This document shows, piece by piece, positions 9,301-31,232 of a stretch of 31,232 nucleotides of DNA; position 1 is the stretch's first letter, and each line of letters begins with the position of its first letter. A program made the translations under genes and the position numbers. The DNA is taken from NCBI RefSeq assembly GCF_006345805.1, contig NW_021832336.1, positions 1 to 31,232 of the forward strand, read 5' to 3'. Below the pieces are notes generated by a model. That model made no database searches. It had not been told where the DNA came from and worked only from the letters and a program-made list of their open reading frames with translations. This DNA is from Octopus sinensis. Lineage: Eukaryota.

Positions 9301-12300
9301 GCTTGCCAGGTCTGACAAATAGATAGAAATTTTTCCCGACTTTATTGCTTCTTCGATAAATTGATCTTTGTTAAATTTTTCATCAGTTAAGTCATTTAAA
9401 ATTTCTAGACTTTTATATATAACAAGATTTACTTTTTGCATTAAGACTCATTGAGAACGTCACAAGAATATTATTAAAAAATTCAAAAAATTATATCTTA
9501 TTTTAAAATTATTTAAATCTTTAAGTATATTGCCTAAAAATTCATTTCAAACCTGCAAATCAAAATTTGATAAAAACACCAGCGTTTTATGCCCCAATAT
9601 CTCCGATGCCTTCGGTCATTTCTGTGTAACAATTAATTTTAACATCGCTATATAAAAACTATTACAGGTTTTAGACTTTCGAACCCGTAGAAAAATATAT
9701 ATTTCAGATCGATTGTATTGTTTCCAAAATAAAAGATAAACCAATTTTCAATGATTCGATAAATTGTGAAAGACTAAATTTTGGCAATAATTATAGAATT
9801 GTCACTGTAATTATCTATTTTGAAATTGGTAGTTGAACTTATTGAAGATGCTTTTTATCAACACAATCAAGTGGCCAACTTGCAAGACCAGGAAAGAAGT
9901 AAATGACAGAAAACCTAGACTTATCAGTGAAACTACAAGCAGATCATTATAACTGTGCATCAAATTTATCAGAAAAATAGGAATCAAACCCAATAAAAGT
10001 GATAATCAATTGGATATAAACTTTGGAAAGATCAAATAATGCTCAAACATACGATTCATTTTACTTTTTGAGCGAAAATAAAGTCAACGGTTCATTTGAA
10101 AAATATAATACCATTATCAGTCACCTTATTTTTGAATTGGAAAAACGTTCCAAGGTTTATTAAAATTAAGTTCACTTTAAGAATTTTGATGAAATTTTGA
10201 CCTCAATTAAAATTTTTGCAGCGCCATACAATATAGATCCTAAGAATGCTCCCTCATCACTCTAATTAGAATTAATAGACCTTCAATCAGATGTGGAATT
10301 TACTTAAATTGTAAAGATTGAAAATATGATGGAATTTATAGTTCACTTCCAAAAAAATATCCGAATATACTTATAAATGCTTATAAATATGCTTCAATGT
10401 TTGGATAAACTTATTTATATGAGTTAATTTTCAGTAAAATGATTCACATGAAAAATAAATAACGCAATAAATTGACTGATCACTTATGTCAACTGTTGCA
10501 TGTGCCTCCTATATTCCGTGTTATGACAAATTAGTTACCAATTGGTTAAAAATTAATGAAAGTTTCCAATTAATTTATTTTGCTGTCCGGAAGAGAATGG
10601 TTAATTGTCGATTTGGCCCGGCGTTAAAAAACTTGAGAAACTCTTGATTAGATGATTTCGCAGTCTGCTAGACTGCGTACGCAGACAGGTTAGTTCCGAT
10701 ACATATATGAATTCAGTTGAACTTTAAATTAAGTTTATTCTGTAGATAAAGTTAACTTTTCTGTTTCAAACAGAAAGCCAGTTATAACAGTCAAATTAAA
10801 GACAAGAAAAGATTACAGAATGATTTCTCTACGACAATTCCCAATTTAAATAATTTCAAATTCGGATGCCAACAGGTTATATAATATGCATTTTCTCCGC
10901 TTTTGTAAATTTCAAATAACTCTACTAGATTATCACAATGTCGATGACAGCATCGTATTTCTCTTTTTGGAAAACCTTCTCAAAAATCTATATAGTTACC
11001 GCAGGAATCAGATCCAGATATTTAAAAAAAATTTACAAAATACAAAATATTTTTACAATAGTTATCTCTATTTTCTTTGACTTTGTAAATAACCTTTATC
11101 AAAAATTATGCTTGAAGTCTGAACATGTGAAAAGAACATGACATTTCAAAAGTGGAGCTACCAAAAATGATGTGACAATGGCTTCGTTGAAAATATGTCA
11201 TTTTATTGCATCACACATGAAGCCGTATACTGATGGAGAATTATTCAAAAAGGCAATACAGATATTTGCCAATGAATGTTGTTCTACCACAATACATGAC
11301 GTTGCCAGAAAATTAACACTAAGCAATGATACTGTTACGAGAAAAATTCAATTAATATCAGAAAATATTAATTATCCAAAAACTCATTACGCATCAGCAG
11401 TGGCTGCACTTCGGATTGCAAGCGAGTTACCGGCTTGGAAAATATAAAAATATATAAAATATTTTTTGTGCGGCCCGCGAAGCTAATCTTAATTATCGAT
11501 TTGGCCCTTGAGCTAAAAAGGTTGAGAACCCCTGGTTTAGATTGTATTGTCTACTTTGAGGAAATTTTGATAGTAAAACTTGCTGACAATTTTGTCCCAA
11601 TACCATAACAAAAGTAAATATTTTTGAGAATGTCCTACATTTTCATTGTTAATACACAATTTCTTTCAAGCATTGGTAGAGAGATTTTAGCTTAATGCCC
11701 AGAGCTTTCTCAAAAATCTATTTTCTGGAAAAGATTGCAGAGTCTAGAAACTTTAAATATTCATTATTTTTATTAATCTTAATATTAAATGGATCTTTTT
11801 TATTATAACAACCTGAATTGTTTTCTGTTGCCAATTATAGTAGTATTGCCTTCACCTTCAATCTAGAAACTGTAGGCATCTTCTGAGAACTTTAAGAGGT
11901 CTTACTTTATTGTAATGAGATTTCTATCAAAAACGTGGCTATATAAAGAAAAGGTCGGTTTCCCGTCATGCCGTCATTATTTATATTAATCAAATTAAAG
12001 AGTTCTTAAAATATTTGTGATTTTAAATTTTTTTTCATGAGATTGTGAATTACAGTTGTACTGACGATTTTATTAACATATATTAAGAAATCTGATTTTT
12101 CTATATTTTATGGCTAACTTTAAGATCATTATTGAAGAAGCATTAGTATCTATTTGAAACACGACTATTTAATCTTCTATATACGCAAAACAGTTAAAAA
12201 TTGATATCAAAAAGTATATGATTCTAAAAGTAGCTGATAGACTGGAATGAAATAATTATTTTCCTTTGAGAATAACTTTAGAAATGTTGATCCCGGATTT

Positions 12301-12874: not shown

Positions 12875-15510
12875 TTAATAAATAATAAGCGTCCCTGGAA
12901 TGTATTCTCCAATTAAATATTCCTCAATAAACAACGAAAAGGCTTCCTTTACAGCCAAAATCGACTTCTTATCAGATGTTTTAGTTATGACACACAGCCG
13001 ATGTTCAGTTAAACTATCCGGCAACATTTTATTGATCTAAAATAAAAAATCACAAAATACTTCTGCCGAAGCTTTAAATGGCACAGAATCACATTTCCGA
13101 AACAAAAACACACAATCAAACGGATTTCTCTCAATTCCATAACCAAACGAAGAAATCTAAATTAATCTAAGCAGTCAATCAAAACATGGAAAGTCAACAA
13201 ATCTGATTGATAAAGCCCACGCACGTGGTCAAAGTCATGAAACAAATCCCTGGAAATAAAATCAGCAAATTTAGATCTAAATTCAACCAGAAAATAATTG
13301 CAAAATAAATTTACTTTCGAGGATCGGCAAATTTCTACACTCGCCACAATTTTGTAGAGTTCTCTTTTTGTAATCTACTCAGAATAGCACGTGCCCGTTT
13401 GTAAGGAGGTGGTTCTTGGATTGACTGTTCATTTGGGTATAATGATTGGGCATATTGGAGAAAGTAAGGGGAGAATATTTCGTCAGTCATGGCTGATAGG
13501 GCGGCCATGTCGTCAAAGCACTCCAATATTGGTCGATATAAACTTTAAATGTTAGTTTAAAAAGAACCCATCGCAACAACGAAATTTGTAAATTTGACAT
13601 ATTTCAGTAAAAACATCAAAAAACCTAAAAAATTAATATTATTAAATTAAATAATATTTCCTAAATATATTTTTTAAATATTAAAAATAGAAAAAACATT
13701 TGACTGATTGCTGTAACAGCAGGATGTTGGTACACAACTCGATGCATCAAAATCCTGTGATTAAAAACAGTAGCAATATCCACAAGTGACTAAAAATATC
13801 TCAAAACACCCCACTTTATCCCTAAAACAAATCATCATCATATTCTTCTCAGGAACAATCAATACACGTGCAGTAATAATCAGTCTTAGTGGGTTCACAT
13901 TGAAAGGTAAATTAAGATGGAATGTATCACGTGCCAAATAATCCAATTTATCAACATCAATTCCGTTATTTTGGTCAGCGACAATCTTAATTAATCAATG
14001 GCATTTACCTGGTAGAGAAATTGCTTATTGGCTCTGATTTTTAAACTTTGGGAAGAGAAAGGGCATATTAGGAGTTTTATGAACTCAATGTCCTCAGAGA
14101 CCAGCCCGTGTGTTAGTAATACTTGGCCAAGATTATTTTGTGAGATTAAATATTCGAACATTTTTATAGAATTATTTTCATGCTAATTTGATTATTTTCT
14201 TATTATATATATTAATATGTCGCGACCCACGCTGGCGACCATACCACGCTGGCGACCAGAGCGACCTTCATTGTTGACAAGATTGACAGGTGGAATTTAT
14301 TCACCACTTCTTCAATTAAATTTCAAGTCTTACCAGAAGCAGTTTTATTTTTTAAAGATTTGCAGACAACAAATTTGCTGTAGATGTCAATAATTGTCAG
14401 TATCCAATTAGATCCATCGTTAAAATCTTTATATCTTCTAACAACAATAAGATCCGCCTGGAATCTTTCATTGGGTTTTCCTGCAGTTACATGGTAATTA
14501 GAATCCGACACCTAGGTATTTTTTTTAAATACTTTCAATGGTAGGGCAAATTTACAAATTTCGCAGTCTTTTATAATTTGTTCGATGATTGGACGTTTTA
14601 CAGTGAAATAGAATTCACTGCACTTTTTCTGAAGCTTTCGTATTCCCCATTGGGATTCTTGGTTAATGGCGAATGCTAGTGTCCTCATCTCCATTTCATT
14701 GTCCAGACAAATGACCATTTGTGTTTTGGTTATTCTCGTCCTTTAGATAAAGACTATGAGTTAGGAGTCGCAAATATACCGATCATTAATAATGATTAAT
14801 TGAGTCGCTTTTTTCATGCTAACATCTTTTGAGAGAAACCATATTTTTTTTGTAAAATGACGCTAAACCATTTCTTAAAATGAATTTTTTCCGGTTTGAA
14901 TCACCTGTCAAACTGAAGGTCATAACCTGTCAAACTGATGGTCGCCAGCGTGGGATGGTCGCCAGCGTGGGATGGTCGCCAGCGTGGGTCGCGACATAAT
15001 AAATAATGTATTTTTAAATTAAAAAATACATTGAATTTTTTCCTGTTGAGGTCATGAAACGTTCAAAGCAATGACTGTGGGGTCCGTGGCCTATATTAGC
15101 CATAAAAATAACCCAAATCATGGCATAACCCAGCAATCTCTATACAGGTGACATCTGAGGGAGTAATATTCAGTTCAGGTTGTACATCCCGGAGATGTCG
15201 AATGAACTGTCCTGCCAAATAGCACACTCTTGACATAAATTAAAGGCAATCCCAACCCGATGCTGTGCTCGAATCTAGTGTGAGTGGCCGAGGGGAATAC
15301 CAAGTGGCTGGGACCTAGTTGTTTAAGCCAGCGAAGTCTTTGAACTCTGGTGTGTCCATTATGGCTACACATAGTGGGGAAAGCTCAATATGTCCATAAA
15401 TGCAGTCTTGGAATACCTATTCTTTTTAATTTATTTCTTTTTATTCGTTTTGATATAATTTTAATTAATAACAAAAAGCAAAATTAATAAAGACAGACTT
15501 TATTGTACAT
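12875..15510 (-). CDS. SAMHD1: dNTP triphosphohydrolase SAMHD1 homolog (HD domain only, no SAM domain)
   Basis: MYNK|[54 protein letters not shown]|VCYLAG...IAGLCHDLG|HGPHSH...|HENNSIKMF...[20 protein letters not shown]...[12 protein letters not shown]...RNPFDCVF...|[16 protein letters not shown]...*. The H..HD..D metal ligands are intact. One intron carries the 14218-14996 transposon. Confidence 0.93.
14218..14996 (-). mobile_element. Internally deleted Ginger2/TDD-like integrase DNA transposon inside a SAMHD1 intron
   Basis: Termini TGTCGCGACCCACGCTGGCGACCA...TGGTCGCCAGCGTGGGTCGCGACA; exact 5-bp TSD TAATA (14213-14217 and 14997-15001). Internal spliced integrase N-terminus ...KDCEICK..PLK|[40 protein letters not shown]|EVVNKF, cut off before the second catalytic Asp. 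Confidence 0.88.
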
Positions 15511-15890: not shown

Positions 15891-15985
15891 TTAACCGATT
15901 TATTTACAATTTTAAATCATTATTTTTTAATGGTTAACCAAAAATCAAATAGAGTTCTCGATAATCAATAAAAATTGTTGATGTC
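15891..15985 (+). repeat. 95-bp dispersed repeat, copy 1 (copy 2 at 23302-23396); likely MITE internal sequence
   Basis: TTAACCGATTTATTTACAATTTTAAATCATTATTTTTT...AGAGTTCTCGATAATCAATAAAAATTGTTGATGTC is nearly identical to 23302-23396. It abuts the 5'-truncated LINE. Confidence 0.9.
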
Positions 15986-17185
15986 TCCCGAGGAAAGTCT
16001 ATTCTCGAGTAATTGAACAACCTTGTAATCCTGAACAACCCCTCACTGCACACAAGAACTCCATACAACACCAAGGACAAGCCTACTTCCCCCGATCTGA
16101 CCCTTTGTTCTTCAACCTCGCACCTCTGGTCAAATGGGGCGTTACCTACGATCTACGGAGCGATCACAATCCGTTAATTATAAAAGTCCAAGTCAAATCG
16201 CCCATTAGAAAGGGGTTCCGCAACCTGAAATACGACTACAAGCACGCAGATTGGGTCAATTTTGCCAATTCCATTGACAAAGCACTGGTTAACTTTGATG
16301 TACATGATTTCGACTCGGTCGACAACGCCTTCAAGCACTTCAACCGAACAATTTTGATTGGAAGAAAATCATTCTTAAGAATGAGGAAAATTTATCCAAA
16401 ACCAGTAAGAAAATTTCCGTCGGGGATTCTACCTCTAATCGAGGAACGGAACTCATTGAAAGGTCGCTCTCATTTTACAAAAGATAACCGGCATCGGATC
16501 AGACTACTGAATAAAGTCATAGAACAATCTGCAAAAGACAAACGGTACGGGAAGGCCGAAAAGTTCGCCAGAGGATTAAATGCGGAGGTCCCACTAACAA
16601 AAGTATGGGCATCCCTAAGAAGAATCACAAACCCTGAGAGATTTAAATCGGGTGAGGATAATGCGGTTCATTTCACCAACAAACTGATAAAGTTCTACGC
16701 TGGGATCAGCAACATCCCCCACAGGAAATATGATGGACCATGCTTGAAGTCGTTGTAACCTCGAAGATGTCGGGACATGATTATTCTCACTCAAGAGGAG
16801 GTGTCTCAGACCATCAGAAATTTAAGAAGCACTGGCTCTTGTGGACCTGACGGAATTCCTACTATTCTGGTGACAAACCTAGGACAGGTGGCAATATCAG
16901 CTCTTTGTCAAATTTACAACTTTTCTATAAACAACAACGCAATACCCACACTATGGAAAATGGCACACATTCGCCTTATTCTGAAACCAGGGAGACCAAA
17001 AGACAACCCGGCGTCCTACAGGCCAATATCTCTCCTCTGCGTCCTTTCCAAAGTTCTGGAAAAACTTATACTCAACCACATCAAACAATATCTCCCGGAT
17101 TTGGACTTTCAACATGGATTTAAATGTGGTAAATCAACTACCTCGCACCTTGTCACTTTGACGAACTTCATCTCAGATGGAGCAA
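15986..17185 (+). mobile_element. APE-RT LINE ORF2 fragment (end of endonuclease to RT domain ~2-3), truncated both sides
   Basis: SPDLTL...DLRSDHNPLII (APE SDH motif), then GPDGIP, WKMAHIRLILKPG, SYRPISLLCVLSKVLEKLI, QHGFKCGKSTT. No introns. Confidence 0.93.
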
Positions 17186-17232
17186 AGCACGGTCTTTTGG
17201 TGCCTCGGTTAGCTTGCAAAACCGATATTGCG

Positions 17233-17900
17233 ATTATTATTATTAAAACCAAGATCACCGTCCAAAACATAGAACTAATTAATCAGGTGATCCCGGCTTC
17301 TCTGAGGAGGGTCCTCATCTTTGCCCGGTGCCTCTCCCTAGTCCCGACACAATTTCTATGAGGGCATGGTGGTGGAGTTTTAGGACCTGTAGGCCCATGG
17401 TTCCGTCCCAAGATTTATTTAAATAAGGCGATCGATAGATTTTCATTTGGTCCTTGTAGTGCTTTCCAAAATCTTTCTTGAGTTTTTTCGATTTTGCACG
17501 GTTTGTTTCACTGACAAACCCACTCCACGCCCCACAAGCATAAGTAATGGAGGGTTCGATGTATTGCCGGTAGATTGATTGGCGTGTGGGGAAGCTGATT
17601 CATTGTTTGCATTTTCGGAGGAACACTTTTAAGATGTTCAGTTTTTTCATGCAGCTAGTTGTAACATATTCAACTTGATGGTAGAAACACATATGACTAT
17701 CGTAAGTCACGCCGAGGATTTTCTGGGATTTTTTTAAGAGGATTTCCGTGTTGTTTAGACTTTTTCAACTTTAAGTGAATTTCACTAAGGTATATTTTCC
17801 TGGAAACGGGGTCAAAAGCCTTATGGATATACACTGAGCACATAACCGTAATGCGATCACTAATAAAGCTTCAATTTAGTCAGGTAATTAATCGGGTCCC
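17233..17900 (-). mobile_element. Second LINE copy (RT C-terminal half with internal deletion, 3' UTR and (TAA)n tail), tail-to-tail with the previous one
   Basis: Minus strand FISDRITVMCSVYIHKAFDPVS (~DISKAFD), KILGVTYDSH, IYRQYIEPSITYACGAW, then a 3' end like that at 409-475 and a TAATAATAATAAT tail. Confidence 0.82.
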
Positions 17901-18142
17901 GCATGTCTGCTATCACAGGCGACGCCCGCGAATCAAGATGGTTTTTCGAGCGGATATCCCTTGCTATAGTACGCTCTAATTCTTTCTCGATCGCGTCGGC
18001 TTCCCGTCCATGAAGCTTTCGAAAACTTGACCGAATTCTTTTTTTTGCGTAACCACAATAATATAATTTGTTAATTAATTCGTTTATATAATAAATAAAT
18101 TACGCGGTATAAAATTTCATTCAATTTACTCTCTTTGTTGTT

Positions 18143-19942: not shown

Positions 19943-22225
19943 CAATGATTCTCAACTCACCTTTTTTTGGTGTCCCAAAAAAAAAGTCAATGTACCAAAC
20001 CAAGTTATTTCGTGTACCAAAAAAACAAAAACTTATTTATTTCTTTTAATTAAATTTAGAGACTTAAAGTATTTTTCTAACTATTTAATGAGAGCCTTGG
20101 TTTTCATGCATTTTAATTAATTTCTGAATATCAGGGTCCAAACGTGTTAAAATTAATCTCTCGAACAGATATCAAGCTTGTTACGTTTATATCGCTCAAT
20201 ATTCTGTTTATTACGCTGAATCCTGATTCCACAAGATATGTTGTTGAAAACATAATAAAATTTTTTATTTGTTCCCAAATCTTTGGAAATTTGTCTTTAA
20301 ATTCCTTTTTTCGCCAAAAGGTAGACAAATCCTGGCTTTCAAACAAAATCTTGTAAGAATAATTATATTTAATTTCTATAAAAAATAATATGATAAAAAA
20401 TACCAATAAATTCATCTTGCAAATCCATTTGCACCTCTTCAGTGCTAGTAAAAAAAGGATTTATCATCCATTTTGGTATTTTCATATTAATCACGTCTTC
20501 AAATCTGATTGTCATTTCCTTTTCCAAATTAATTAGATGGTCAACAAAAATTTTTATATCAAATTGATTAAATGCTTCACATACTGGATATAGAAAATCT
20601 TATTTGCCTGATTCAAAGTTATGTCTAATTCTTTAACTTTTCACAGAATGTAATTGTAACTCTGACGTCAAACATAGTTACAAAATCTCTCTGCAATTTC
20701 AAGGAAATTTCATTCAATTTAGCAAAAATCCAATTTAAATAATAGATAGTATTAAACTGAAATAAGTGACAAATAGTTATTAACTAACTAAATTCCCGGC
20801 CTCGTAAATGGAAACGTACTATAGCCAAGGAATAGATATATTTTTCATTTTCGAAAATCGATCTTGCTAATTCATCTTCATTTTCCGATTCAAGAAATGG
20901 TAAAAGGTTTACAAATCTTTGTAAAGCAGTGCCTTTGGACAACCAGCGAACCTATAGACTATAAAAAACAAAAATAAACTTCAGTATGATACAAGAGTCT
21001 TAAATAATCTTCATTCCTATCTATACAAAATTTCCTAAAGATCATATCAGATTTTGGACTTGTTTTAATTCGATTGATCGTTTTTATGACAAGATCCAGA
21101 ACTTGATTTAAAAAAGCGAAAATTTTTTTTCGAAACAAGATGATGCCGGTGTAATACGCAATGAATATGAATTAAATTCGGACATTTTTGTTTCAAAAAA
21201 GACGCAAATCCTTTGTACTTCCCAACCATGGCCATTGCACCGTCCGTAGCACATGCAATTAAATTGGAAAATGGAATTTGTTTTTCTTCAAAATAGGTTT
21301 TCAATACATTAAAAATTGACTCTCCGGTAGATTCTGTTATCAAAGGTCTGATAAACAAAATCTCTTCACAAAAAACTACGTGTTCGTTAAAAAATCTTAA
21401 CAAAATATTATTTAAAGTACCTACCTAACATAGGCCATTAATATAGATTTATTATCACATACCAGACATTCGTCAATCTGCAACGAAAAAACAGTTTTTC
21501 TAAGTATATTTTTTAAGGAATCTTCGACGCTTTCAGCCATTTCGTCAATTCGGCGACGAATCGTATCATTACTCAAAGGTAAATTCTAGCCACATCAAAA
21601 TGGTCGCACTACTTTTAAAATTTCAGATGGATTATGTCCCAACATATCTTGTAAAACAACTGCGAGAGAAGGTATTATTAACGATTCACCCGAAACATGG
21701 GTAGCATTATTTTTAGCAACAATATGGGCAATTTTGTAGGATGCAAGTAACCCATCTATGAAATAGCTTAAAGGAATACTTTTTCGCGCAAGAGCATGAT
21801 GAGTGATTAACTTTTGAAGAGTGGTAGGTTCATCAATCTTGTTTTTTATATTTTGAAAATATTCAAGCTAAGATCCGACTAGATTTGGATGTCTAGTCCT
21901 CAAATGGTGTTTAATCTTGATAATTCATTGAACTATTGGCCAAAGAAATTTAGCAGATTATGCAAAAAGGCCTAGATTTATCTCCACTGGAAAGGATAAA
22001 TCCATATTTCAGATATTCTTTACGATAAATCCGAGGCGTACATGAATTACCACCAGGCATGTGATTGACACGAGTATTTATAGGTATCGAATGATAATGG
22101 TTAACCATCGTAATGTACTAATTACTGATAATAAAAAAATATTTTAAAAAATAATACCATGTACCAATTCGAGTATTTTCCATGTACCAAAAATGGTGCA
22201 CATGCACCACGGTTGAGAATCACTG
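19943..22225 (-). mobile_element. Near full-length hAT (Buster/ZBED5-type) transposon with intron-containing transposase
   Basis: TIRs CA(A/G)TGATTCTCAAC at both ends. Spliced protein EYLKYGF..RPFCIIC..KHHLRTRH, EILK|NLPLSNDTIRRRIDEM, FSLQIDE, AYVR|FFNE, IACATDGAMAMVG, HCVLHRHHL, YHTE|VRWLSKG, FSTTYLVESGFS. Confidence 0.9.
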
Positions 22226-24469: not shown

Positions 24470-27400
24470 ATGGACACTTTTTCGAACAAAAAATACAAAA
24501 AGTACCTTAAATGCATAAAAAACACCAAAATTCCTTCAAAAATCAAGCTTTGTTATTTAAAACGTCTTGAACTATATTCCAGAGATTCTAACTCGAAAAA
24601 ATCCTTCCTAATCAATCAAGGTCCCGATTTATTTCTCCAATTCCTTTCCAACTCGTCAGACGATCAAAACATTTACGTTCTGGAACTTTAAAAGCATTCA
24701 AAATATTTTCCCAATCCTACCAAATGTACTTTTTTATAATATTTTTATAGAATTTTCTTGTACAGTTAATTTCAAAATAGGTAATTTATATACATAAATA
24801 TTACTTTTAGCTCAATTTATAACCGAATGGAATGGCGAGGAAAACTTGATTTTGTTGATAAAATTTATATCGGTTTTTATAAAATCTACAAAAAATAAAT
24901 TTATTTTTTACCCAAATAACTTCTTGTTTTAATTTTATACTCAAATTATGCATCTCAGTTGATTCTTCCTCTAATTTACTCAGGCACTCCCTATCGGTCT
25001 TAAGGTAAAATTATTAAAATAAACATCAAATAGTAAATTAATTAAATTTAAAAAACTTGCTCGTCATATTATAGAAACTTGTCCTGATTTAACACCTTTG
25101 TTTGTCCGTAGTGATTCAATTAAGATTAGATTGGTCAAAATTATTAATGAACTTATTAAAAGGTAATAAAAATAATGATTGTCGCGCGCAATGGATGAAA
25201 CGCGTGCCTAAAGTGAAACGCTGTGAACCTTGAGAAAACCACAAAAAACCTCGAAAATAAAATTAACAATCCTTTGATGAAAACAGGAATAAAACCGAGA
25301 AATCAATTTTTTATTATTATCGTTTGAAAGATTAACAATTTATTTAAATAATGGTTAGCCATTTTAAAATTACCAAAAAATTAAAAATATTTTAACCTGA
25401 AAATTTACCTGTCTAAATTTTTTTAACTTGTGATTTAAATACTATTTTTTCATTTCCATCTTGATCTTTTATTTTAACTCTATTATTTGAAATTAAATCT
25501 TCAACAGTAAAGATTTGTTGATAATAAAAAGATTCTAATTTTCGCTTCTTCGTCCTTTGATTTGTATCAAAATCTTTTTTCAGCAAAACATTATTTCCAA
25601 TTGCAATTTCTTTCAATGTTTTTGAAAAATTTCGTTCCATTCTTTCAAGATATTTGTCATTTATGATAGTTTGATTTTCATGTTCTTCAATTAATTCATC
25701 ATCATTATAATAAGAAATGTTATATCCTCTTATTCGGAAAAAAGCCATAAATGGTGACATATTTATAGAAGAATGAATTGAAATATTGTACTGATATACA
25801 ATTTTTTCTAACACATCCACCCATTTTTTCTGTTTGTCTGTGAGTTCTTTTTGAATCCATCTGCAAATGGTTTGATTGCAACGCTCCACTTGTCCCTGTG
25901 ATTCTGGATGTCTTGGACGTCCCCTTTTATGAATTATTTTAAATTCTTCACATAATGACGTTATTTCTGAATTAACAAATTCTGTTCCGTTGTCAGACTG
26001 CAGAATTTTTGGTGGACCATAGGAAAGAAATATAGTTTTCAATGATTCCGAAACTGTAACTGCTTCTTTATTTTCTATTTTTTAGCAAAGCAAAATTTTG
26101 AATAAATATCTATGACATTCATAAGATATTTATAGGAATCATTTATATCTGCATAAAACGAAAGATCGACTAAATCAACTTGATAGCTAAAAATAAGCTA
26201 TTGAATGAACCGTTCTCGAGGTTCTTTGGCTACTATGTTGACTAGTGGATATTTTGTCTTTAAGGGCTGACTTCGCTGACATTTGTGGCATGATGATATT
26301 ACATCCCTAATTATGTTTCGATTGATTATGCAAAAATTATTTTTGCAATACTCTTCCATTTTATTAAATCCATAGTGATAAATTGAATGAATCCTTTCAC
26401 AATGCAGTTTCATGGATTCGAAATCATTTGAGGCAATTACCAATATTTTGTTTCCATCAAATTGTTTATAATATAGCACACCTATCATTAGATTTAATAG
26501 TACCTCCAGAATTTACGAAATTTCTAGTTTTTTTGAGAAAACGAAATCTTTTTAGTCTTGAAAATTTTCTGGTATAAATCTTCAACAGTAAAGATTGTAT
26601 TATTTATTAAAAAATCAAGAATATTCTTATACTCCTGATCATCCTTTACAATGTTGGCAAATCTCATTTCGATAATATTATCTCAAAGTGCGCAATCATC
26701 TTTAATATCTTTAATATTGACTTGATAATTGTCAAGAGCTTAATTGAAGGTTAAATTCAAGGTCACAGCGTTTCACTTTAGGCACGCGTTTCATTTATGG
26801 CGCGTGACAATGATAAATATAGATATTATGGTTTAAATTGGGAACATAATGATTATGGCTCTGATTGCCGTGGAGTGACACAAAGTTGAACAGATTTCCT
26901 GACTGATGGGGTCGTTGGGAGTATTTATAATGCCCTTCAAGAGTCTGAAAATGTTTTTTTAGTTAGAATATGTTTTATGTTTTTTCTTTTGCTTGCATTT
27001 AAAGGAGAATATAGTTGTAATCTATTTAGATCACTAATACTATTGATTTGTGTTTTTTTGATGAGAAGGATGACGTTCCTTCCATTAATTGTGTCAATTT
27101 TATTTATAATTTTTACGATCAATTGATTGGTTATATTTTAAAAATATATTGGGGCACTTCTATGAGTATTTGTAGTTGTTGGTCGGCTCTTGTCTATCTT
27201 TTTGAGGCCCACGATAAAAAAATTTTACCAAAGTTTCATTTTGTTGTATTACTCTCGAGATTTTATGATAAAAATGCTGACTCTAAAGTTTTTTTGACTC
27301 AAGAATTTGTAAATAAATTAATTTTAATTTTCAGCGAGTCTTTTGAGTTCCCCGATGATATGAAATGCTCATTTTCTTATATATATCCTTCTAATAAACC

Positions 27401-28539: not shown

Positions 28540-28645
28540 TACAGGGTATTTCATTAATATATCCTCTAATTTCATAAATATATCCTCTAATTTCATAAAT
28601 AAATCCTCTTATTCCATAAATATATCCTCTTATTTCATAAATATA
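28540..28645 (+). repeat. Four-unit 21-bp tandem repeat preceded by a TA|TACAGGGT mariner/Tc1-like terminus
   Basis: ATATCCTCTAATTTCATAAAT x4 (with substitutions) from ~28558; TATACAGGGT at 28538-28547. No matching opposite end found. Confidence 0.7.
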
Positions 28646-28878
28646 TCGTATATTATAAATAATTATATAATGTAGTAATTCTTGTAGAAATGTTCGTATG
28701 TCGTATACGTATATTTCAAGTTACATTAACAAAGACCAACTTTTAATTTAAAAAAACAAATGTTAATTAATTCTGTTAATAATCGCATTCACTCTATTCC
28801 AAAATGACCGGTAGTACTCGGTAAACATTGAATTAGAAGAAAGCGATTGTATAACATCTTTTAAGTTTTCTTTTAAAG

Positions 28879-31232
28879 CAGGGCTGGCCAACCCAAGGCC
28901 CGCGGGCCGCATGCGGCCCGCGATGGAGTTTGGTGCGGCCCGCGAGAGAAATTTTGTATGTAGTTAACCTATAAATACATTCAAGATAAATTTTTCTTAA
29001 GTTTAATAAATAAAGATAAATTTTATAAGTTTAATAAATTTTAAAGTTTATCTATTTTTGTAACTGTTATCAATATGAAGAAAAGGAAAATTTTTGAAGA
29101 AAACAGGCAATTCAGCAATCATTGGGAAAAAGATTACTTTTTTATAATGCATAATTCCAAGCCAACATGTTTAATTTGCAAGGAGAAAGTATCGGTGGTG
29201 AAAGAGTACAATGTAAGAAGACATTATGAAACAAAGCATTCCGAATACGCGAAATTTAGTAAGGAATTGAAAACAAGGAAACTGGATTCGCTTAAATCTG
29301 AATTGAGAAATCAGCAAAGACTATTAAATTCATCGATACACTCTTCTTCTGATACTGTTAAAGCAAGCTACTCTGTTGCAATGATAATTTCAAAGAGAAT
29401 GAAATCATTTTCGGATGGAGAATTCGTAAAAGAGTGTTTGAATGCTGTCGTGAAAGACATTTTGCCAGATAAAACTAAAAAGTTTTCAAACATCAGCTTG
29501 TCACGTCAAACCATATGTCGCAGGGTTAATGACATTTCAAATGAAATTGTGGTGACTTTGTGTGATCAAATAAAATATTTCAAAAGTTATTTTTTGGCCT
29601 TTGACGAATGCACGGATATATCAGACACGTCTCAACTTGTAGCTCGTCAAAAAAAATTGCTCAGCCATTTTTTCATGCTTTTATTGACAAATTAATAAAA
29701 AATTTAATCTTACACTTCATTTTTTATTCTAATTCTTAAGTATATTAATTTATTTATGCGATTTTATTTCAATATAAGGAATTTAAAGCATAAAAATTTA
29801 AATCTCGTGACAAAAAACATTGCTCACTTTTCTTGTTATTGCATATGCCACGTTCTCCCAAGAAACAGTTAACTGAATTAAAAAGGGATGATTATTGCGT
29901 ACTTTAAAGAGGGTAAATCAATCAGAGAAATCTCAAAAATACTTAATTTGCCGTATTCCACAATTTCATTTAATATTCGAAAATTTCGAGAATTTGGAAC
30001 ACTGCATTGGAGACCGGGCTCAGGACGTCTTCCGAAACCAAGTTCCCCCCAAATACAATTTTTATCTAATGAAACCGAATCACATCCTACATTGTTGGCA
30101 GTGGATTTGTCCAACAAAACTAAAGAAACTTTCAATATTGATGTTCCCCTAGGACAATTCTGAGAACTTTGAATAAAAATGGGGTATATTGTCGTGTAGC
30201 AAAAAGAAAGCCATTGCTTTCTCAAAAAATATTATTTCGAGATGGTCTGCGTCACTACGATTTTTATCGATATCTGATAGTACATGGAAATCGGTGATAT
30301 TCTCAGATGAGTCAATGTTCGATGTTTTTAACAACAGAAAACATCAGGTTGTTTACAGAAAAAATAAAACGGAGTTAAAAAATGCACATTTGCTGCCGAC
30401 TGTTAAGTTCGGAGTAGGGAGAGTTATGATTTGGGGCTGCATATCGTATAGTGGTGTAGGCAATTTGGTTTTTATCGAAGAAACTATGAACTCTGGATAT
30501 TATATAAATTTACTGTCTAATAATCTGGACCAATCAGCTGAAAAAATGGGCTTATCCTCGTTTATTTTTCAACAGGATAATGCTCCATGCCATACATCTC
30601 GTATGGTTAAGGCATATTTCGAAACCAAAAAATATATTATTCTTGATTGGCCATCGCAATCACCGGATCTTAACCCAATAGAGCATGTATGGTGCTTTAT
30701 GAAAAGAGAATTAGCTAAAAATCCCCCGAAAAGTAAAGAGGATCTAAAGACAAATATTATGAAAATTTGGCAGTCAATTCCTAAAAGTTTTTTACAAAAC
30801 TTAGTAAATTCAATGAGAAAAAGGAGTTATTCTTTATATTTAGCAAGGGGAGGACATATTAATTACTGATAATGAGATTCCAAATTTGTGCTAATGTTTT
30901 TTGTCTTGCAATTTGTTGTTTTGTTTAAGTTTGTAAATAAAAAAGAAAAATTGTATTATAAAAATTAAGGTATAATAATAAAATACTACTTAAAGATGTT
31001 TACAAAAAAAATAAATCAGAATAATGCTATATAAAGACATAAACATTGGTGAGCAATTTTTTTTGACGACCACTGTATATTCGTGGAGTTACCGAATCTT
31101 TTCAAGTGAAACAAGAAATGCTTAACCTTGTCAGTTTGAAAGATACTACAAAGGGCGAAGATATTTTCCAAGCTGTTATGAATTGTTTATCCGACAATGA
31201 AGCGAATTTAGAGACCCTTGCTGGATTGACAA
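28879..31232 (+). mobile_element. hAT transposon (GTF2IRD2/EPM2AIP1-like), interrupted by Tc1, running off the window end
   Basis: Left end CAGGGCTGGCCAACCCAAGGCCCGCGGGCCGCATGCGGCCCGCG after TTTTAAAG. ORF 29075: MKKRKIFEENRQF..WEKDYFF..CLICKE..YNVRRHYETKH...LAFDECTDISDTSQL; it resumes after the Tc1 at 31078 as IRGVTESFQVKQEMLNLVSLKDTTKGEDIF. Confidence 0.93.
29642..31075 (+). mobile_element. Tc1-family transposon (DD34E), full length, inserted at TA in the hAT transposase
   Basis: Right end TGAGCAATTTTTTTTGACGACCACTG|TA; left end TA|GCTCGTCAAAAAAAATTGCTCA (terminal CAGT missing). Transposase ~29845-30869 with HTH, GRLPK, FSDES, FQQDNAPCH and WPSQSPDLNPIEH; 34 residues between the second D and E. 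Confidence 0.95.

Follow-up and report, generated by a model that had tools for sequence, protein, structure and literature searches.

A Ginger2/TDD-like transposon in an intron of a SAMHD1-like gene, with probable ultrashort introns of host type in its integrase remnant

Ginger2/TDD elements such as TDD-4 and TDD-5 are cut-and-paste DNA transposons with a Gypsy-type integrase that combines an H2C2 finger and a DDE core; their termini are of the TGTNR type, their inverted repeats extend over tens of bp, and 4-5 bp of an AT-rich target are duplicated (Bao et al. 2010, PMC2836005). They are described as having neither the GPY/F (C-terminal SH3-like) nor the YPYY motif (PMC2836005). The transposase genes of Ginger1 contain one to four GT-AG introns, a case of an integrase-type DNA transposon whose transposase gene is broken by canonical introns (PMC2836005). 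Introns shorter than 30 nt are, among animals, reported in a 2026 paper to be limited to myxobolid myxozoans and Dicyema japonicum; in these animals the median intron lengths are 22-27 nt, just GTa...AG is left of the splice signal, and the GC content of Henneguya is 29% (PMC13644364). The elements described here share the listed properties of Ginger2/TDD, but they are very small (1.6 kb) with integrase as the sole product, and they seemingly keep a Ty3-like C-terminal SH3/GPY-F-type region. They resemble Ginger1 in the interrupted transposase gene and differ from it in their 5-bp AT-rich duplications and 21-26-nt introns, whereas Ginger1 has CCGG 4-bp duplications, extra OTU/Ulp1/PHD domains, and introns of normal size. 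The introns are similar to those of the ultrashort-intron animals in length (20-30 nt there, 22-28 nt for host introns here) and in the GTa...AG signal, but the published introns are located in host genes, whereas the ones reported here are located in transposon genes with intron-free relatives elsewhere.

The window, by which we mean the whole 31,232-nt stretch of contig NW_021832336.1 that was analysed, contains a SAMHD1-like host gene with an HD domain. The focal transposon is located in one of the introns of this gene, on the same strand and in sense orientation with respect to it. The intron (14183-15029, minus strand) lies between two exons identified by homology, one at 15030-15090 and the other at 14009-14182 (both minus strand), the latter ending in ...FLYQ. 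It is 847 nt long as found, and when the flanks are joined to recreate the empty site, a 63-nt GT...AG intron is obtained. The focal element occupies 779 bp (14218-14996, minus strand), as defined by its termini (TGTCG...CGACA), inverted repeats, and flanking direct repeats, and is an internally deleted, non-autonomous Ginger2/TDD-like DNA transposon. The target-site duplication TATTA is found at 14997-15001 on the 5′ side (...TTTATTA/TGTCGCG) and at 14213-14217 on the 3′ side (GCGACA/TATTAA). The outer 41 nt of the 5′ terminal inverted repeat (14956-14996, minus strand) match the 3′ arm (14218-14258, plus strand) at 40 of 41 positions. Weaker pairing runs on to ~14900 in the 5′ arm, which includes a TTGACAGGTG motif, and to ~14292 in the 3′ arm. 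Repeat comparison in the window revealed three tandem 17-nt subterminal repeats (CCACGCTGGCGACCAT+1) at 14937-14988 and two further copies at 14227-14258, at the opposite end of the element; no further copies were found elsewhere in the window. These repeats are putative transposase-binding sites.

A second element, referred to as copy 2, belongs to another lineage and is a near-full-length integrase element of 1630 bp (25180-26809, minus strand). It has termini of TGTCA...CGACA and is flanked by the target-site duplication ATCAT at 26810-26814 and 25175-25179. The ends, inverted repeats, and 5-bp AT-rich duplications of both elements would place them with the Ginger2/TDD-like transposons. Both sets of termini fit the pattern TGTNR...YNACA. 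The inverted repeats, 41 nt near-perfect with an imperfect extension to ~75-95 nt in the focal element and ~47-52 nt in copy 2, are in keeping with the ~50-180 bp of such elements, and the duplications (TATTA and ATCAT) agree in their length of 5 bp with those of TDD-4/5. At the protein level, H2C2 and DDE (rve) are both found, with matches to Pfam rve in 14 of 14 members and to Integrase_H2C2 in 9 of 14. The best solved-structure relative of the family profile is the Ty3 integrase (1e-27), with which the profile aligns through the C-terminal part, and one relative matches SH3_Tf2-1.

Integrase homology in the focal element spans positions 14299-14832 (4.5e-34, family profile against the window). 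The coding remnant (14293-14817, minus strand) runs from the ATG of MKKATQL to EVVNKF, with an alternative upstream ATG possible at 14842, and covers the protein from the N-terminal region through the H2C2 zinc finger as far as the first catalytic Asp; its residues 144-203 match Pfam rve. The reading frame ends at EVVNKF (14293), flush with the 3′ inverted repeat on its inner side. This is the internal-deletion junction (14292-14293, minus strand), where integrase codon ~150 abuts the repeat; of ~400 codons, ~150 are left and ~250 are deleted. Both histidines of the zinc finger are substituted (by N and Q) in the alignment with relatives, and the A-runs at 14717-14731 (minus strand), downstream of the first mini-intron, contain a 1-nt shift, which may be a real mutation or an assembly indel. 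What had been called the integrase gene of the transposon in the preliminary description is thus a remnant. As read from its sequence, the focal copy is a dead non-autonomous relic unable to make a working protein, and it would be mobile only with integrase supplied by a full-length relative.

This remnant is interrupted by three short GT-AG segments on the minus strand, the positions and lengths of which are exactly as in the preliminary description. Mini-intron 1 (14754-14779, 26 nt, GTATATTTGCGACTCCTAACTCATAG) reads GTATAT...CATAG, is in phase 2, and contains an in-frame TAA. Mini-intron 2 (14512-14532, 21 nt, GTATTTAAAAAAAATACCTAG) reads GTATTT...CCTAG, is in phase 0, and contains an in-frame TAG. 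Mini-intron 3 (14310-14333, 24 nt, GTAAGACTTGAAATTTAATTGAAG) reads GTAAGA...TGAAG, is in phase 1, and contains an in-frame TGA. Retention of any one of the three leaves a stop codon in frame. The family profile, built from 12 intron-free relatives and searched against the six-frame translation of the window, was given no splice information, and it puts insertions at all three segments. The closest relative of the focal copy, P0133 (44% identity), is uninterrupted across all three junctions, with NLYLKD, PLKISD, and KSGNEVE (also KSGNEVERE) where the focal copy has INDR/LYLK, PLK/VSDS, and KTAS/EVVNKF, junction peptides that had been reported correctly. Since the profile places insertions at these points and P0133 reads through them, the three segments are very probably real introns, namely spliceosomal mini-introns of the host type. 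An alignment with family members had been proposed as a check on them, and removal of the segments does give colinearity with P0133 and with the 12-relative profile, both of which represent database relatives. The sequence shows how the element is built, what it is related to, and how its splice sites are arranged, and we infer that splicing takes place; the host spliceosome would excise the three introns from a transposase transcript of the active parent element.

Profile scores were compared for different readings of the focal copy. With nothing removed, the score is 115.1 bits; it increases to 126.5 bits (+11.4) upon removal of the 21-nt segment, to 121.3 bits (+6.2) upon removal of the 24-nt segment, and to 132.7 bits when both are removed. 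The earlier statement that stops and frameshifts vanish on removal therefore holds for these two segments, the in-frame TAG and TGA of which are gone, but not for the 26-nt one. When all three are removed, the score is 11.6 bits: the frame breaks, INDR/ is followed by 18 residues and then TGA, and the zinc finger is out of frame. Excision of mini-intron 1 restores the LYLKDE motif locally, and the frame needs an additional 1-nt fix. With all three segments removed and one base skipped anywhere in 14717-14731, the score is ~159 bits (158-160 bits depending on the base).

We considered whether mini-intron 1 instead uses an acceptor further downstream, giving an intron of 39 nt (14741-14779) or 45 nt (14735-14779) and no frameshift. 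Both versions are stop-free from the ATG at 14817 with the sequence as it is, and together with removal of the 21-nt and 24-nt segments they score 135.8 and 134.6 bits, respectively. However, both lose the conserved LYLKDE block, which is present in every relative, the 26-nt intron with the 1-nt fix scores higher, and 39 nt is outside the 22-28-nt range of the host introns seen here. A downstream acceptor is therefore quite unlikely, and we prefer the 26-nt mini-intron 1 with the 1-nt shift. The pattern goes well beyond chance: of the 22 segments of 15-40 nt that are bounded by GT..AG within the coding remnant, just four improve the profile score, namely the 21-nt and 24-nt ones plus an alternative acceptor for each of introns 1 and 3.

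The degenerate state of the focal copy, which is shortened, frameshifted, and without its zinc-finger histidines, is also what would be expected if the segments were plain decay insertions in a dead transposon that were never spliced. Against this, all three segments, as well as two comparable ones in copy 2 (see below), are bounded exactly by GT...AG, as are just 0.2% of arbitrary intervals of 20-30 nt here. With 21-26 nt, all five are similar in length to host introns, and each removal brings back gap-free colinearity with relatives. Decay insertions are thus very unlikely. The preferred reading, that a transposon inside an intron of the host gene has an integrase remnant with three mini-introns of the host type, is likely on present evidence, consistent with the earlier proposal of introns inside a transposon inside an intron: the insertion is an element with terminal inverted repeats and a Gypsy-type integrase, it has enlarged a 63-nt host intron to 847 nt, and against intron-free relatives its segments look like introns of the host style. 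The statement of the preliminary description that Tdd-4/Ginger elements can carry introns is itself documented, for Ginger transposase genes (PMC2836005).

Homology places four further introns in the SAMHD1-like gene, of 28, 22, 23, and 25 nt, which have nothing in common beyond GT...AG. The transposon introns (21-26 nt) are within the distribution of the host introns (22-28 nt) of the same gene. The GC content of the window is ~30%, and the top SAMHD1 matches come exclusively from animals, with at most 49% identity. We predict that the host is one of the ultrashort-intron animals, a myxobolid myxozoan or else a dicyemid. An AT-rich window with tiny introns may also bring to mind a ciliate in which TAA and TAG encode glutamine, so that no removal would be needed to open the frame, except that of the third segment with its TGA; under table 6, the frame is indeed open from ~14907 to the TGA in segment 3. 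Several observations contradict this. Glutamine is encoded exclusively by CAA or CAG throughout the conserved exons and the copy 2 coding sequence, copy 2 stops on a TAG at the normal C-terminus of the family, and the 21-nt and 24-nt segments whose sole stop is TAG still stand out as insertions against the relatives. We rejected the ciliate code, which is hardly credible, on the basis of the codons in use, the point at which copy 2 stops, and the animal-like host gene. The predicted coding sequences fit the standard genetic code.

We note that eight 1-nt frame problems were counted in the window, two each in the host gene, the focal copy, copy 2, and a Tc1-like element described below. In the host gene, a conserved exon contains a 1-nt frame break (DTPEF/QRLR, 15331-15350, minus strand), and a 1-nt phase mismatch is found across the transposon-bearing intron at the donor exon (15030-15045, minus strand); lengthening an A6 run by one A would resolve this mismatch. 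The SAMHD1-like gene is either a pseudogene or part of an assembly with indel errors. As the eight problems are mostly located at homopolymer runs, long-read assembly indels are suspected; this distribution suggests such errors, and some of the problems may be real decay.

Copy 2 contains two mini-introns of its own. J1 (26482-26503, minus strand, 22 nt, phase 1) is offset by 4 nt from the site that corresponds by homology to focal intron 1. J2 (26187-26210, minus strand, 24 nt), within RER/Y, contains an in-frame TAG and occupies a site without an intron in the focal copy. Removal of J1 and J2, together with bridging of two 1-nt frame breaks in homopolymer runs, yields a 400-residue integrase that scores 437 bits, compared with 2.9 bits for the raw sequence. 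The five transposon introns are thus 21-26 nt long, and all five have GT...AG ends. The focal copy and copy 2 are 30% identical over their common region; in a crude bootstrap analysis, they were sisters in 0 of 200 replicates, and each has an intron-free relative that is nearer to it than the other copy. The comparison covers one copy per transposon family.

A database search with the copy 2 integrase returned ~20 relatives of 400-450 residues, each encoded by one ORF on a contig of 1.5-2.6 kb. They include two from microsporidia, Pseudoloma neurophilia and Nosema granulosis, and this occurrence hints at horizontal spread among parasites. The same small integrase-only family is seen as intron-free ORFs in other organisms (L002, P0130, P0153), the two microsporidia among them, and L002 (927-2613 in Logan SRR30230062), which is from another organism, has TGTCG...CGACA ends. 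These database ORFs were called without intron models, so intron-bearing relatives would go unseen. Exact-protein look-ups of the ORFs of the window returned no sister copies on record. A search of metagenomes with the 18-nt terminus gave 35 single hits in GC-rich DNA; none of them has the longer 25-nt terminus, and they were therefore regarded as chance matches.

With regard to the origin of the introns, the preliminary description suggested that intron sizes had been driven to the host norm during long residence, i.e. that the introns are ancient in the family and were shortened. That Ginger1 transposase genes contain one to four introns and that focal intron 1 and J1 are just 4 nt apart would be consistent with this scenario. 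In contrast, none of the ~20 close relatives has an interrupted ORF, both elements are nearer to intron-free relatives than to each other, and the remaining introns are at different sites. Ancient introns followed by shrinkage are thus rather unlikely, and neither shrinkage nor long residence is supported by these data. Because the closest relatives are without introns and the introns of copy 2 are at other positions, the evidence leans towards mini-introns that were gained at the host size rather than shrunk to it; the failure of the two copies to group as sisters in any of the 200 bootstraps also favours gain over inheritance. We infer the timing of the gains from these comparisons: the introns would most likely have been gained by the transposon lineage while it was resident in an ultrashort-intron host. 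Possibly, and we propose this only tentatively, two lineages of an otherwise intron-free, integrase-only family, with relatives in microsporidia and environmental samples, independently gained five ultrashort introns after entering an ultrashort-intron animal and thereby reached the intron density of host genes.

Two sources of intron sequence were considered. Comparison of the introns with the flanking exon sequence by eye gave no support for an origin by tandem duplication. Derivation of intron 2 from a host intron was suggested by an 86% match over 21 nt; the full intron 2 segment has no match at three or fewer mismatches, and we therefore regarded this lead as a chance match of low complexity and rejected it.

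The basic finding is expected, as introns in transposase genes and ultrashort introns in myxozoans and dicyemids are both already published. Only one part is worth pursuing, namely that five introns may have been gained independently in two lineages. The valuable contrast is that the relatives elsewhere are single ORFs and the two resident lineages have two to three host-sized introns each, at different sites. If the gain is true, such transposon copies would record, in a form that can be dated, how introns were recently gained in animals, and if sister copies agree, they would provide a dated multi-copy system for intron gain under splice signals consisting of GT...AG only. For annotation, transposon genes in such genomes look riddled with stops unless introns of 20-30 nt are modelled.

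In Drosophila, the third intron of the P element is spliced specifically in the germline, and its retention blocks production of active transposase. This is the model behind the suggestion in the preliminary description that the introns act as a germline/soma expression switch. Unlike the P element, the focal copy is predicted to encode no functional protein, whether spliced or not, and nothing in our analysis bears on such a switch.

Other features were noted in the window. A Tc1/mariner-like element, which matches Pfam DDE_3 and has inverted repeats of 29 nt, is located at ~29644-31069 (plus strand), seemingly within a hAT-like gene that contains a Spin-doc zinc finger (29045-29692). In the N-terminal part of the Tc1-like element, no mini-introns were seen, and the two frame breaks there are 1-nt shifts at homopolymers. 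Further ORF fragments that look hAT-like by eye (e.g. ...ACATDGAMAMVGKYKGF...) are located at 20616-21867 (minus strand) and 11142-11444 (plus strand); two of the fragments were compared with Pfam and have no hit at E ≤ 0.001. An Rfam scan of the window gave no matches. A 21-nt tandem array (ATTTCATAAATATATCCTCTA) at 28547-28661 contains ~5 copies with 87-92% identity. Two fragments resembling reverse-transcriptase tails, at 487-861 and 17318-17599 (both minus strand), have a common YIEPxIxYACxAW motif. Finally, a block with 43% GC at ~15980-18000, compared with ~30% in the rest of the window, holds a fragment of a non-LTR reverse transcriptase (RVT_1), which is located immediately upstream of the first recognisable exon of the host gene.
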